From sequence record LC727698.1: DNA of 64,000 nucleotides; one strand, written 5' to 3'. The notes beneath the pieces were generated by a model that saw only the letters and a program-made list of their open reading frames with translations, was not told the DNA's origin and ran no database searches. Positions 57,039 to 61,003 of the stretch are shown here, piece by piece; position 1 is the stretch's first letter, and each line of letters begins with the position of its first letter. A program made the translations under genes and the position numbers.

Positions 57039-59723
57039 ATGGCTATTAAAAATTTTAGCATAAGTGGCATCGGACGCGATGTCCAGCTAGGCAAAAAAGG
57101 CGGACGCCTTTCTTTTACAAGCGGTGTATTTGCATTCACTAGTGACCTGGGCGGTACTAACTATGCACCTGTTATAGGCGGAACACCCCTACAACCAGAA
57201 CATTTAGCAACTAAAGCATATGTAGATTCTATAAGCGGCGGAATAAAACCACTCCAAAGTGTTTCGGTTTCTACACAACAGTCATATACTGTAGACGGTA
57301 ATAATACTAATCCAGGAACGGGTGCAACTTGGGCTGCCGGTGTATTTAGTGATTTCCCCAGAACAGTAGACGGACATGTACTGGAAATGGGAAGTCGTGT
57401 TTTAGTTAGACTAGAAGGTATAACTATAACAGGTGACACACCTACTGTCAACGATGCTGGCGCAGCTAGAAACGGTATTTATATTGTTACTAACGTAGAC
57501 ACGGAAAACAATACAGTTACATTAGACAGGGCACCAGATTCGGACGAAGATAATGAGTTTATATTTGGCTCATATGTTCTTGTAGAAAACGGTACTTCTG
57601 CAGGCGACGGTTATACTTTAACTGCACAATACGGTGGTTCAGAAGTTACTCCTCCCAACCAGATGAACGTTGATCCGCAATTCTGGGTAAAATACACTTC
57701 TGCAGGCGCAACATATACTGCAGGCGCTGGCCTAGCGTTGTCGGATAATGAATTTTCGTTAAGTATTCCTACTTTATCGGATTTTACAGGCACTGCTGCT
57801 GATACATTATCTCTAGCAGTATCTAACGGTACAACTAATAATAAATTAACAGTAAATAAATTATTTACTGATTTAGGAGTTGTTACTGCGTTAGGACAAA
57901 CCGATGGTGTTATAGTAAAATCTGGTTCTAGCTATGTAAGCAGAACTATAGTTGCAGATACTACCGGCAATAAACTAGGTATTGCTGTATCTAATACAGA
58001 CGGTTCTGCAGGAAATATAACAGTAGGGTTAGATGTAAATGGATTGACTGCCGTTTCCTCTGCACTAAACGATACTGATGTCCTCCCAATATACGATGGA
58101 ACTAGTAACAAAAAGGTTTCTATAAGCCAATTAGCTGCCGAATTTACATCTGGTTTTTCTTCTAATAGTATTTCTCAATTAGACAGTTCTGTTGTAGTAA
58201 CAGACACAGGATCTAACGGTACAATTACCTTTACTGCTGATAATACTGCTGTTGCTACTATTACTTCTGCAGGTCTTACTTCGTCTAATTTAACTGCAAG
58301 TAACTTAACTAGCGGAAGAATAGTACTGGCAGGAACTTCCGGTCATTTAGAAGATAACTCTGCTCTTACTTTTTCTGCAGGTATACTGAATGTAGGATCA
58401 CTGACTGTAGATAGTGCTACTAGTACAATTTCTACAACAGAAACAAACGGAAACATAATTATTGCGCCAAACGGTACAGGCGAAGTAGTAATACAAGGCA
58501 ATGGTAATGCAGAAATAAGTGCAGAACTAGGTGAACAACTAAGTCTACGCGGTGACGGTGTTATTATAGGAAACACTGCAAACACAGTAGACTATATTAC
58601 TGCAACAGAAACTAATACTATATTCTATTCTACATTAGCAAATAATATAGCTATTGCCGGTGCTGCTGCGAGTTCAAACCCGTCTATTACTGCATTAGGT
58701 TCAGATACAAACTTAGGCCTAAACTTAGGAGTAAAAGGCACAGGAAAAATTGTTGTTACCGGCGTAACTGCATCTGCATATTCTTCTGGTTTAACTGACG
58801 CATCGTTAGTTAACAAACTATATGTAGATACTGCTGTTTCGAGTGCTTCTAGCAACATAACAGCACTACAAACAGAAGTAAATGCCATAGAGACATCTGT
58901 GGGATTAAACACTGACGGAACTCTTTCTGCATATACCGGAACAAACTATTTAGACTCTGCAATTAGTATAAGACAGGCTACTACTTTACTTGACGCACAA
59001 GTAAAAACTAATGCAGACGATATATTAGATAAAGCAGATCAAACCGAAGTAGATGCCATAGAGACTGCTGTTGGCTTAGGAACAGATGGCACACTAGCAC
59101 CTTATACTGGAACAAATTATTTAAATTCTGCAACTAGTATAAAACAAGCAACTATTTTGCTAGATACACAAATAAAGTCCAACGAAGACGATATAGCACT
59201 AAAAGCCAACCAAACAGAAGTAGATGCTATAGAAACAGGCGCTGGGCTCAATACAGACGGTACTTATACTGCCGATGCAACTACTAACTATATAACTACT
59301 GCTACAAGTTTAGCTAATGCAGACAAGTTATTAGATGCACAAATTAAAATTAATACCGATGCTATTGCACAATTGGGTTCTGCTGCAGGTTCGGTTCGTA
59401 CTGTAACATTAGAAAATATTCCATTTGATACTGATAGTTCGACTCCTATAATAGAAGGCACCGATCTACCTGCAAACGGCATTATTATCAATAGTATAAT
59501 ATTTAAAGTAAATACTGCTGCTGATACTGCTGCCTGGGCTACTGTAACTCATAACTCAGTTACACTAGCATCAGACACAACTAATGATCCGGAGGTAGCT
59601 GGATTATATCAAGTGGACGTGTTCTCTAATTCGGTCGCCGGACAAGATATTACTCTAACTATAGCTGCACATGGCGCAAGTACAGGTACTGTTACTGTAT
59701 TACTCCAATATACAATTCTATAA
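57039..59723 (+). CDS. tail/head fibre-like structural protein (894 aa)
   Basis: HLATKAYVD, RVLV...Q/E...NGIY, YTAG.GL motifs typical of fibres. Confidence 0.75.
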   Translation: MAIKNFSISGIGRDVQLGKKGGRLSFTSGVFAFTSDLGGTNYAPVIGGTPLQPEHLATKAYVDSISGGIKPLQSVSVSTQQSYTVDGNNTNPGTGATWAAGVFSDFPRTVDGHVLEMGSRVLVRLEGITITGDTPTVNDAGAARNGIYIVTNVDTENNTVTLDRAPDSDEDNEFIFGSYVLVENGTSAGDGYTLTAQYGGSEVTPPNQMNVDPQFWVKYTSAGATYTAGAGLALSDNEFSLSIPTLSDFTGTAADTLSLAVSNGTTNNKLTVNKLFTDLGVVTALGQTDGVIVKSGSSYVSRTIVADTTGNKLGIAVSNTDGSAGNITVGLDVNGLTAVSSALNDTDVLPIYDGTSNKKVSISQLAAEFTSGFSSNSISQLDSSVVVTDTGSNGTITFTADNTAVATITSAGLTSSNLTASNLTSGRIVLAGTSGHLEDNSALTFSAGILNVGSLTVDSATSTISTTETNGNIIIAPNGTGEVVIQGNGNAEISAELGEQLSLRGDGVIIGNTANTVDYITATETNTIFYSTLANNIAIAGAAASSNPSITALGSDTNLGLNLGVKGTGKIVVTGVTASAYSSGLTDASLVNKLYVDTAVSSASSNITALQTEVNAIETSVGLNTDGTLSAYTGTNYLDSAISIRQATTLLDAQVKTNADDILDKADQTEVDAIETAVGLGTDGTLAPYTGTNYLNSATSIKQATILLDTQIKSNEDDIALKANQTEVDAIETGAGLNTDGTYTADATTNYITTATSLANADKLLDAQIKINTDAIAQLGSAAGSVRTVTLENIPFDTDSSTPIIEGTDLPANGIIINSIIFKVNTAADTAAWATVTHNSVTLASDTTNDPEVAGLYQVDVFSNSVAGQDITLTIAAHGASTGTVTVLLQYTIL
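58869..59381 (+). repeat. three tandem 171-nt (57-aa) repeats
   Basis: QTEV(N/D)AIET..GL.TDGT...NY starting at 58869, 59040 and 59211. Confidence 0.85.
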
Positions 59724-59735
59724 GTTGTTTTAAAT

Positions 59736-59765
59736 TAAATAAAGGGCCCTAGGGCCCTTTATTTA
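59736..59765. terminator. 30-bp perfect palindrome, bidirectional terminator
   Basis: TAAATAAAGGGCCCT|AGGGCCCTTTATTTA. Confidence 0.85.
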
Positions 59766-59801
59766 TGTATAAACAGAGCAGATCACAAAACACAATAAAC
59801 T

Positions 59802-59809
59802 CATAAATA
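59802..59809 (+). promoter_or_regulatory. late promoter (CATAAATA) of the holin-like gene
   Basis: Intergenic, about 75-90 nt upstream of the starts. Confidence 0.6.
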
Positions 59810-59881
59810 CTTTCGTATAGTAAAATACTATGCACAGGAGTTCCTGCTCGGAGTAGAGGCTCCAGAGCATGGGGTTCTTTC

Positions 59882-60223
59882 GTGAGGAAACAAAAAATGT
59901 CAGAGAACACTAAACCCCTAACTTCGGACAAAATGCTTAATTGGAAACCGCTGGCGGCATTAGTCTATTTGTTTATCTGCGTTATGGATTTTGTTGTTAT
60001 GCCGGTCCTAGTCCATCAATACAACAAAGAAATGTTATCTAAAATTTCTAACTTATCTGAGCAAAATCTTGTTTTAGAAAAAACAGAAGTTTTAAAATTA
60101 CAGAAATGGGAACCATTAACATTACAAAACGCAGGGTTGTTTCATATTGCATTTGGCACTATAATAACAGGTGCGGCAGTGTTTGGCGAAATTAGACAAC
60201 GTACCAAATCATCTGGCTCTTAA
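59882..60223 (+). CDS. holin-like membrane protein; alternative starts GTG 59882 and ATG 59897
   Basis: Two hydrophobic helices (WKPLAALVYLFICVMDFVVMP; LFHIAFGTIITGAAVFG), basic C-terminus, own late promoter. Confidence 0.55.
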   Translation: MRKQKMSENTKPLTSDKMLNWKPLAALVYLFICVMDFVVMPVLVHQYNKEMLSKISNLSEQNLVLEKTEVLKLQKWEPLTLQNAGLFHIAFGTIITGAAVFGEIRQRTKSSGS

Positions 60224-60279
60224 AATGAATAATACATACACAGTTTTAACCATTCGGGGTTTTGGTAGAACTTAAATAG

Positions 60280-60334
60280 AATACCCAAGCCCAGACCAGG
60301 CTTAAGTATTTTTAATTAATAGCTGACAGTCACA
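60280..60334 (-). ncRNA. candidate minus-strand small/antisense RNA
   Basis: Downstream of a minus-strand sigma70 promoter; 12-bp hairpin fully paired only on the minus strand (two G-U); no SD-led ORF. Confidence 0.4.
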
Positions 60335-60340
60335 CATAAC

Positions 60341-60369
60341 ATTGTATCACATATAGCTACTTGGTGCAA
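60341..60369 (-). promoter_or_regulatory. sigma70 promoter pointing into the holin-like gene
   Basis: Reverse complement: TTGCAC-17-TACAAT with TGn extension. Confidence 0.65.
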
Positions 60370-60390
60370 GAATACAAGTCGGAATTTGTT

Positions 60391-60418
60391 AGCTGACCCG
60401 TTTGGGTCAGCTCTTTGA
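60391..60418 (+). terminator. hairpin/terminator closing the holin 3' UTR
   Basis: AGCTGACCC-gttt-GGGTCAGCT then ctttga. Confidence 0.6.
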
Positions 60419-60430
60419 TTGGATTAGACA

Positions 60431-61003
60431 ATGAGCATACTTACCTCTATATTAAATAATACTTTAAATTCAGTAGTGTTTGTTTATGGTAGAATGAATC
60501 CCCCTACAATAGGGCACGGAAAAGTTATATCAGAAATGCTAAAGATAGCAAAAGAATATAATGCTGCGCATTGTGTGTTTTTGTCTCACTCTTCTGGAAA
60601 TAAAAAAAATCCATTACTTTGGGAAGAAAAAGTATCATATATGAAAATGTTTTTTCCTGGGGTAAATATTAACGAATCTAAAATAAATAATCCGTTTTCT
60701 GCATTAGATTTACTTTCGAAAAAATATAAACACGTAACCTTTATTGCAGGAAGTGATAGATTAGAAGATTACAAGAGAAATATGCCTGCATATGCAAAAA
60801 GTATAGGCATAGAATTAGATATAATATCGTCTGGTAATAGACTAGAAGAGAGTACTTCTATAGAAGGTGTAAGTGCATCTAAAGCAAGAAAATTAGTCTT
60901 AGAAAACAACTTTGAACTATTTTCTGAATTAATACCATCCAACGATATTGCAGAAAAAAGAAATTTATTTTTGCTGCTTCAAACTAGATTAATGGATAAT
61001 TAA
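60431..61003 (+). CDS. HIGH-superfamily cytidyltransferase-like nucleotidyltransferase
   Basis: GRMNPPTIGH, KNPL....K, AGSDR, SAS..R. Confidence 0.85.
   Translation: MSILTSILNNTLNSVVFVYGRMNPPTIGHGKVISEMLKIAKEYNAAHCVFLSHSSGNKKNPLLWEEKVSYMKMFFPGVNINESKINNPFSALDLLSKKYKHVTFIAGSDRLEDYKRNMPAYAKSIGIELDIISSGNRLEESTSIEGVSASKARKLVLENNFELFSELIPSNDIAEKRNLFLLLQTRLMDN

Follow-up and report, generated by a model that had tools for sequence, protein, structure and literature searches.

We analysed a stretch of 64,000 nucleotides (nt) from sequence record LC727698.1 (hereafter the window), which, judged by sequence identity, belongs to a Pseudomonas jumbo phage of the Wroclawvirus (PA5oct-like) type. Over the 731 bases around the gene of interest, the window matches Pseudomonas phage sp. 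30-3 at every base (100% identity) and shares 98-99.7% identity with ten further Wroclawvirus records (PA5oct, MIJ3, Paride, Cassandra and others). This gene, an open reading frame (ORF) at 59897-60223, is the orthologue of PA5oct gp306 (EST35_0306), which in the PA5oct record begins at the ATG, comprises 108 amino acids (aa) and is labelled 'structural protein, ESI-MS/MS' (electrospray ionization tandem mass spectrometry). It lies between the gene of an 894-aa tail-fibre protein (57039-59723) and a cytidylyltransferase gene (60431-61003), with spacers of 173 nt upstream and 207 nt downstream. The original prediction, made from the letters alone, had read the locus as a lambda-like holin gene with two translation starts and a highly structured leader RNA. 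We suggest that it is best explained overall as a single-start, gp306-type holin or holin-like lysis protein in a transcription unit of its own, a reading to which we give roughly an even chance.

The gp306 orthologue is predicted to be an inner-membrane protein with two transmembrane domains (TMDs) and both termini in the cytoplasm. This N-in, C-in topology is expected because the N-terminus is slightly basic (net charge +1) and the C-terminus basic (net charge +2), and would place a helical loop of ~37 residues in the periplasm. TMD1 is rich in Leu, Val, Phe and Ile and strongly hydrophobic, and does not resemble a signal-anchor-release (SAR) domain. An AlphaFold2 model built on a 73-sequence alignment of the family has a mean predicted local distance difference test score (pLDDT) of 86.8, with helices at residues 12-51, 56-65 and 74-107. 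W16 and D31 are invariant in the 73 family members, and Y24, F32, P36, W71, P73, T75, G80, H83, F86 and G87 are near-invariant. Small size, an inner-membrane location, at least one TMD and a charged, here basic, C-terminus are general traits of holins that this protein possesses.

Direct comparison of the window protein with Pfam, PHROGs and NCBIfam returned no match, and a word search found six relatives only. A profile built from these six relatives, however, detected 967 cluster representatives at E<=1e-3 and 599 at E<=1e-10, with at least 574 matches in IMG/VR, many of them on contigs of 200-520 kb. In a bacterial and archaeal collection of ~185,000 species genomes there were three matches, all on contigs of metagenome-assembled genomes (MAGs), so prophage context offers nothing. 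The gp306 family occurs almost only in viral DNA. When 73 members were scanned singly, 45 matched the Pfam family PF11351 (GTA_holin_3TM) below or near its cut-off and 38 matched phrog_3427 ('holin', category lysis); no other family recurred among the matches of these 73 proteins, and NCBIfam offered no competing family. The matches always cover the W-R/K-P helix and often reach the last helix (model positions ~49-123 of 123), with the TMD1 segment corresponding to positions ~57-105. Two members exceed the Pfam gathering cut-off of 24.8 bits: P0033 with 26.3 bits, and a gene on a Haliscomenobacter MAG contig (L096) with 29.4 bits over model positions 49-122. Alignment of the family profile with 25 canonical PF11351 genes from Pseudomonadota genomes (hhalign) gave a probability of 78% and an E-value of 1.8e-5 over 80 columns that include both TMDs. 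In a Foldseek search of BFVD, the first named hits past the direct homologues (hits 4-7, E 2.8e-4 to 6.7e-3) were four proteins annotated as 'Holin of 3TMs, for gene-transfer release', and in the ESM Atlas the sole named neighbour set was PF11351, which we treat as a lead. Neither Pfam nor PHROGs has a separate family for the gp306 proteins. These profile and structure comparisons suggest that, among the PF11351 / phrog_3427 holins, the gp306 family forms a divergent branch with two TMDs. Of the original prediction, the holin itself is therefore the part that stands as plausible, by remote homology, although the window protein on its own stays below the thresholds of the hidden Markov models.

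In both groups, a W-R/K-P motif leads into a transmembrane helix that carries a polar residue and, close to its end, a Pro; a second helix is rich in Gly, and the tail is basic and R-x-x-E-K-like. Of the PF11351 architecture, the gp306 family would have kept the W-R/K-P helix together with the final helix and the basic tail at the C-terminus. In contrast to PF11351, its N-terminus is short and variable and lacks the N-terminal amphipathic and coiled region of ~50-60 residues; model positions 1-50 and the third hydrophobic segment are missing, and the loop between the helices is about twice as long. It differs furthermore in being almost wholly confined to viral contigs (by the IMG/VR and MAG matches given above) and, compared with the GTA (gene transfer agent) subgroup of PF11351, in not standing beside a GH108 endolysin gene. 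The Pfam name of PF11351 refers to gene-transfer-agent release, and we take the GTA-holin family of TCDB to be grouped with PF11351 / phrog_3427. Canonical PF11351 genes were present in 47 of 301 sampled Pseudomonadota genomes (loci L101-L130), and six of the 25 inspected adjoin an endolysin gene with GH108 and PG_binding_3 domains. Other canonical PF11351 genes were seen among housekeeping genes (dehydroquinase II, RF3), and much of the 'GTA holin' family may consist of genes that do not serve lysis. For RcGTA of Rhodobacter capsulatus, the characterised GTA holin rcc00556, a putative PF11351 member, and the endolysin rcc00555 are needed for lysis and release (PMC5026251); according to an earlier paper, direct lytic activity had not then been demonstrated (PMC3423380).

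Among other holins, the class II proteins, such as pinholin S21 68/71, share with gp306 two TMDs and a predicted N-in, C-in topology. Unlike the pinholin, gp306 has a strongly hydrophobic TMD1 in place of a Gly/Ala-rich, releasable one, a long periplasmic loop (~37 aa), no conserved dual start and no detected sequence similarity. A further likeness to the S21 system may lie in the proposed PA5oct endolysin gp368, whose N-terminus appears weakly hydrophobic and SAR-like. This SleB-like candidate endolysin (L131:14192-14758) starts with MTTTEATLLSLAIAASCMVADK; this short stretch is hydrophobic and rich in Ala and Ser, and may serve as a SAR or signal-like anchor. The gp368 gene has no membrane-protein neighbours, and its neighbours within gp364-gp371 all lack a TMD. 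In T4, the holin gene t adjoins the tail-fibre genes and is remote from the endolysin gene. The gp306 gene, likewise, ends a tail-fibre block and is unlinked to an endolysin gene, and its product, if a holin, would be encoded at a distance from the endolysin gene, like that of T4 t. It has no sequence or fold relationship to T4 holin T, which has one TMD and a large periplasmic domain. Atu_ph07, a jumbo phage with a gp306 homologue, shares T4 core genes (PMC6102473).

No holin was identified in PA5oct (PMC7318152), and for Atu_ph07 the lysis mechanism was stated as unknown and no holin was identified (PMC6102473). We propose that the gp306 orthologue would most likely be the holin, or holin-like membrane-permeabilising lysis protein, that these phages lacked in annotation. 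More generally, PA5oct-, Atu_ph07- and Phosso-type jumbo phages may have their missing holin in the gp306 family, which would be an offshoot of the GTA holins with two helices and no linkage to the endolysin. From family comparison and modelling, we regard a holin or holin-like lysis role of the gp306 orthologue as evenly poised. The family would then provide a concrete candidate lysis-timing gene for therapeutically relevant Pseudomonas jumbo phages, and its tie to GTA-type holins would improve the annotation of hundreds of metagenomic genomes of large phages.

Several observations weigh against a role as holin. The window protein itself had no PF11351 match at E<=0.01, nor at E<=0.1 in the family scan, and PF11351 and phrog_3427 found no match in the whole PA5oct record (PF11351 at E<=10); the link to PF11351 depends on profiles and on other members of the family, with an hhalign probability of no more than 78%. 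In ~240 ORFs within three genes of 47 non-redundant IMG/VR loci of the family we found a single GH19 gene and no enrichment of endolysins; recurrent neighbours were RyR-domain proteins, cytidylyltransferases, DNA ligases and fibre-like domains. Polar TMD residues (D31, H83) are conserved more strictly than in most holin families. PA5oct gp306 was seen by ESI-MS/MS in purified virions, which is unusual for a holin. Hydrophobic segments furthermore occur in ~50 small ORFs of PA5oct, which leaves room for other holin candidates; ten of the best of these rival membrane ORFs had no match to a lysis family in PHROGs, which does not exclude them. We found no experiment on any member of the gp306 subfamily, and the homologue is not listed in the Atu_ph07 supplement.

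Several of these points would equally suit a membrane protein of the tail-fibre module with no part in lysis, for instance a virion-associated protein that enters the host membrane during infection, a factor for fibre assembly that is bound to the membrane, or a protein of superinfection exclusion. Its likeness to PF11351 would then stem from common ancestry or a common helix-hairpin fold, and the function would not be shared. We consider such a role possible, if rather unlikely. Detection in virion preparations, the invariant polar TMD residues and the 47 loci without endolysin linkage speak for it. So does the conserved place of the gene, which closes the tail-fibre block and precedes ligase and DNA polymerase genes in PA5oct, the closest diverged relative (P0002, locus L132, 64% identical), Atu_ph07, Phosso and locus L013, in the first four of which it comes right after tail-fibre-like genes. 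The restriction of lysis ties to a subgroup of PF11351, many canonical members of which lie among housekeeping genes, points in the same direction. However, a place beside tail-fibre genes and far from the endolysin is also that of the T4 holin gene t. Four independent methods returned the holin family as the only family signal, and no known exclusion or ejection family was matched. The PA5oct virion list, moreover, includes seven enzymes unrelated to the virion (PMC7318152), and the detection of gp306 by mass spectrometry could be membrane carry-over.

The features of the locus, including those of the leader RNA and the start region, are collected in Table 1.

Table 1. Position and evidence for features of the gp306 locus, numbered from the first base of the window.
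Feature	Position	Strand	Evidence or remark
Intrinsic-terminator-like palindrome after the tail-fibre gene (AAAGGGCCC TA GGGCCCTTT, then a T-rich tail)	59741..59766	+	Read from sequence
CATAAATAC, one-base variant of GATAAATA; candidate promoter of the gene's own transcript	59802..59810	+	
Leader hairpin 1, 8 bp, AAA loop	59815..59833	+	-7.1 kcal/mol, z -6.2; in minimum-energy fold
Leader hairpin 2, GC-rich, 9 bp with one-base bulge, then GGGGTTCTTTC	59845..59869	+	-14.2 kcal/mol, z -2.6
Claimed hairpin 3 (GTG in loop, Shine-Dalgarno sequence in 3' arm), not supported	59875..59889	+	-1.8 kcal/mol, z -0.03
In-frame GTG, most likely a chance codon and not a start	59882..59884	+	Out of frame in 3 sister phages; GGGG paired
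Shine-Dalgarno sequence GAGGA for the ATG, 8-9 nt spacer	59884..59888	+	Read from sequence; unpaired probability 0.64
A6 homopolymer, last A is the A of the ATG	59892..59897	+	A7 in 3 of 10 sister phages
Coding sequence, 108 aa, two-TMD inner-membrane protein, holin candidate	59897..60223	+	99-100% identity in 11 Wroclawvirus records
TMD1, residues 19-40, after the W-K-P motif, includes invariant Asp31	59951..60016	+	Kyte-Doolittle peak 2.55
TMD2, residues 78-96, Gly/Ala/Thr-rich, near-invariant G-L-F-H-I-A-F-G motif	60128..60184	+	Kyte-Doolittle peak 1.63
Terminator-like hairpin in the 207-nt downstream spacer, 9 bp, 6 GC	60391..60412	+	Consensus scan

The leader is structured as a whole (59802-59920, z -2.79), and of the three hairpins that had been described in it, two withstood comparison with shuffled sequences. 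Hairpin 1 was matched by none of 200 shuffles; it probably lies at or near the 5' end of the transcript and may act as an mRNA-stabilising 5' stem-loop. Hairpin 2 was matched by five of 200 shuffles. Its variation among sister phages is limited to a G/A exchange in the loop, the presence or absence of the bulged A and the base adjoining it on the 3' side, and no further copy was found in the window, so that it is unique and not a repeated element. An Rfam search of the leader returned sub-threshold noise alone. Hairpin 3, in contrast, which had been proposed to set the ratio between the two starts, folds no better than chance (it was equalled by 87 of 200 shuffles), does not appear in either the minimum-energy or the centroid fold and costs +2.5 kcal/mol if forced. 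The letters TTCCT, read as an alternative anti-Shine-Dalgarno sequence, are indeed present at 59841-45, but forcing their pairing costs +7.4 kcal/mol. The two stable hairpins would most likely stabilise the mRNA or damp the expression of a toxic membrane protein; a choice between start codons is not a likely function for them. On the minus strand, a 60-aa ORF at 59749-59931 runs over the leader and corresponds to a 47-aa protein in the PAC2 annotation; we rejected it as probably no gene, because it contains the site of the 1-nt indel by which hairpin 2 varies among sister phages.

The start codon is most likely ATG 59897 alone, which would be served by the Shine-Dalgarno (SD) sequence GAGGA. 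The sequence details from which a second start had been deduced are all exact: GTG at 59882-84, then AGG AAA CAA AAA and ATG at 59897-99 (M-R-K-Q-K-M), with GGGG at 59871-74, 7 nt ahead of the GTG, and GAGG at 59884-87, 9 nt ahead of the ATG. Two products would follow from them, a 113-aa antiholin with three additional basic residues from the GTG and the 108-aa holin from the ATG, in a ratio set by the leader RNA. The leader of the window and those of nine sister phages (10 genomes, 99% identical) were compared in an alignment. The GTG is in frame in seven of them, the window included, the residues between the two codons are basic, and the protein resembles holins. PAC2, Cassandra and Callisto, however, all isolated as viable phages, carry A7 where the other seven genomes have A6 in the run that ends in the ATG. 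Their GTG frame encodes MRKQKNVREH, 10 codons that are followed by a stop, and an N-extended protein is therefore not possible in these three phages. Since A7 is found on both hairpin-2 haplotypes, it must have arisen more than once or recombined, and from this alignment the A-run appears to behave as a length-variable non-coding spacer. A homopolymer sequencing error, which is not wholly excludable, would need to have occurred in three separate submissions (Spain, Switzerland, Thailand).

Diverged homologues point to the same single start. The closest relative, P0002, has a stop codon 15 nt 5' of its ATG, an in-frame upstream start is absent in the L132, Atu_ph07, Phosso and L013 homologues, and the ATG is used in every annotation inspected (9 of 10 sister-phage GenBank genomes). 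In the predicted ensemble, GGGG, the putative SD of the GTG, has an unpaired probability of 0.03, i.e. it is 97% paired, while the GAGGA and the ATG are ~60% open. The GTG, moreover, overlaps the SD of the ATG, and would be a chance in-frame codon within the ribosome-binding region.

With lambda S105/S107, gp306 has in common that it is a small phage membrane protein with a structured 5' region and, in this genome, an in-frame upstream start with basic residues. Lambda S is a class I holin with three TMDs, an outward N-terminus and an sdi stem-loop, and its gene belongs to a cassette with endolysin and spanins; gp306 has two TMDs, its sdi-like stem-loop is not significant, and its upstream start is out of frame in three of 10 sister phages. 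The gp306 gene also lies outside any lysis cassette, between tail-fibre and cytidylyltransferase genes, and the family scan of the window protein found no sequence relationship to lambda S. The charge mechanisms of S107 and S21-71 would not obviously apply to gp306, because TMD1 is strongly hydrophobic and not SAR-like; an antiholin made by additional N-terminal charge, as had been proposed, is not supported.

One family-wide count weighs against a purely single start. N-termini of the form M-(basic, no acidic)-M occur in five of 47 non-redundant members, compared with 11 of 515 neighbouring ORFs (longest-ORF rule; Fisher p 0.007). We consider this enrichment a weak signal and a lead, because N-in membrane proteins have basic N-termini anyway, by the positive-inside rule, and because A/G-rich ribosome-binding regions that are read in frame encode Lys, Arg and Glu. 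Two of the homologues may be described individually. In that of NCTB (L012:5899-5913), the sequence TAA-ATG-AAA-CGA-ATG, or M-K-R-M, abuts the stop codon of the upstream gene, and the homologue on a 424-kb IMG/VR contig (L035:3950-) has the lambda-like N-terminus MRSFKM. Because of the A6/A7 indel, the chance-level hairpin 3, the lack of upstream starts in relatives and the paired GGGG, a dual-start timer is, on this comparative evidence, very unlikely, and we consider a functional dual start in this phage improbable. An alternative start that is in frame and brings basic residues is easily over-read where it falls within an A/G-rich ribosome-binding region, and in the present case the comparison of sister genomes settles the matter. 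That the A-run is instead a slippage-prone switch, with A6 yielding a minor N-extended (+3 charge) isoform and A7 none, would mean heritable, reversible differences in lysis timing among closely related jumbo phages; we find this hardly probable, and gp306 as the missing holin is more probably correct.

The gp306 gene would form a small transcription unit of its own between two terminator-like hairpins (Table 1), with a leader of ~80-95 nt that would begin near the late-promoter-like CATAAATAC. The upstream palindrome is invariant across the window and the nine sister phages. In the PA5oct RNA sequencing (RNA-seq) data, which are available as assembled contigs from four runs, contigs break near 59687-59841 in three of the four runs, which is weak, suggestive evidence for a terminator. 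The depth of the gp306 transcript in these contigs is similar to that of the tail-fibre gene.

The CATAAATAC motif ends five bases before hairpin 1 and differs by one base from GATAAATA, a sequence similar to the T4 late promoter TATAAATA. All seven plus-strand copies of GATAAATA in the window (1960, 2405, 3988, 19649, 39282, 43610 and 57001) lie 19-88 nt upstream of an ORF start. PA5oct has 20 plus-strand copies, ~17 of them directly 5' of an SD plus ATG and all within 75-232 kb, the structural region. The counts of TATAAATA and ATAAATAC in the window are not above chance, and the informative signal is the positional bias of GATAAATA only. The PA5oct paper reports solely TATAATA and TTGAC motifs (PMC7318152), and GATAAATA may be an unreported late-promoter motif of these phages.

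At the matching relative place, the 64% relative has TATAAATA itself, which is followed two bases on by a 9-bp hairpin and then by a long GC-rich hairpin. The layout of promoter-like motif, 5' hairpin, GC-rich hairpin, SD and ATG thus appears, from these two leaders, to be kept in architecture and not in sequence. The leader of this relative (L132:3772-3860; -48 kcal/mol, z -6.7) is even more structured than that of the window, and its GGGGUUU can pair with AAACCCC on the upstream side or, alternatively, with the AACCCC of codons 5-6, a possible alternative-pairing arrangement at the start site. In the leader of the Atu_ph07 homologue (L010:5905-5952), an 8-bp hairpin (CCTCGGAA ... TTCCGAGG) contains the SD GAGG in its 3' arm and a AATAAATAC motif in its loop, and extends to 8 nt before the ATG.

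Downstream, in two of the PA5oct RNA-seq runs, contig depth rises 20-70 fold from ~60197-60260 on, and the raised depth covers the 3' end of the gp306 gene, the 207-nt spacer and the cytidylyltransferase gene (window 60137-60700). The spacer contains a hairpin at 60287-60303 in addition to the terminator-like one at 60391-60412, and the sequence TTGTTT-17-TATAATA at 60137-60166, inside the end of the gp306 ORF, is a candidate sigma70-type promoter.

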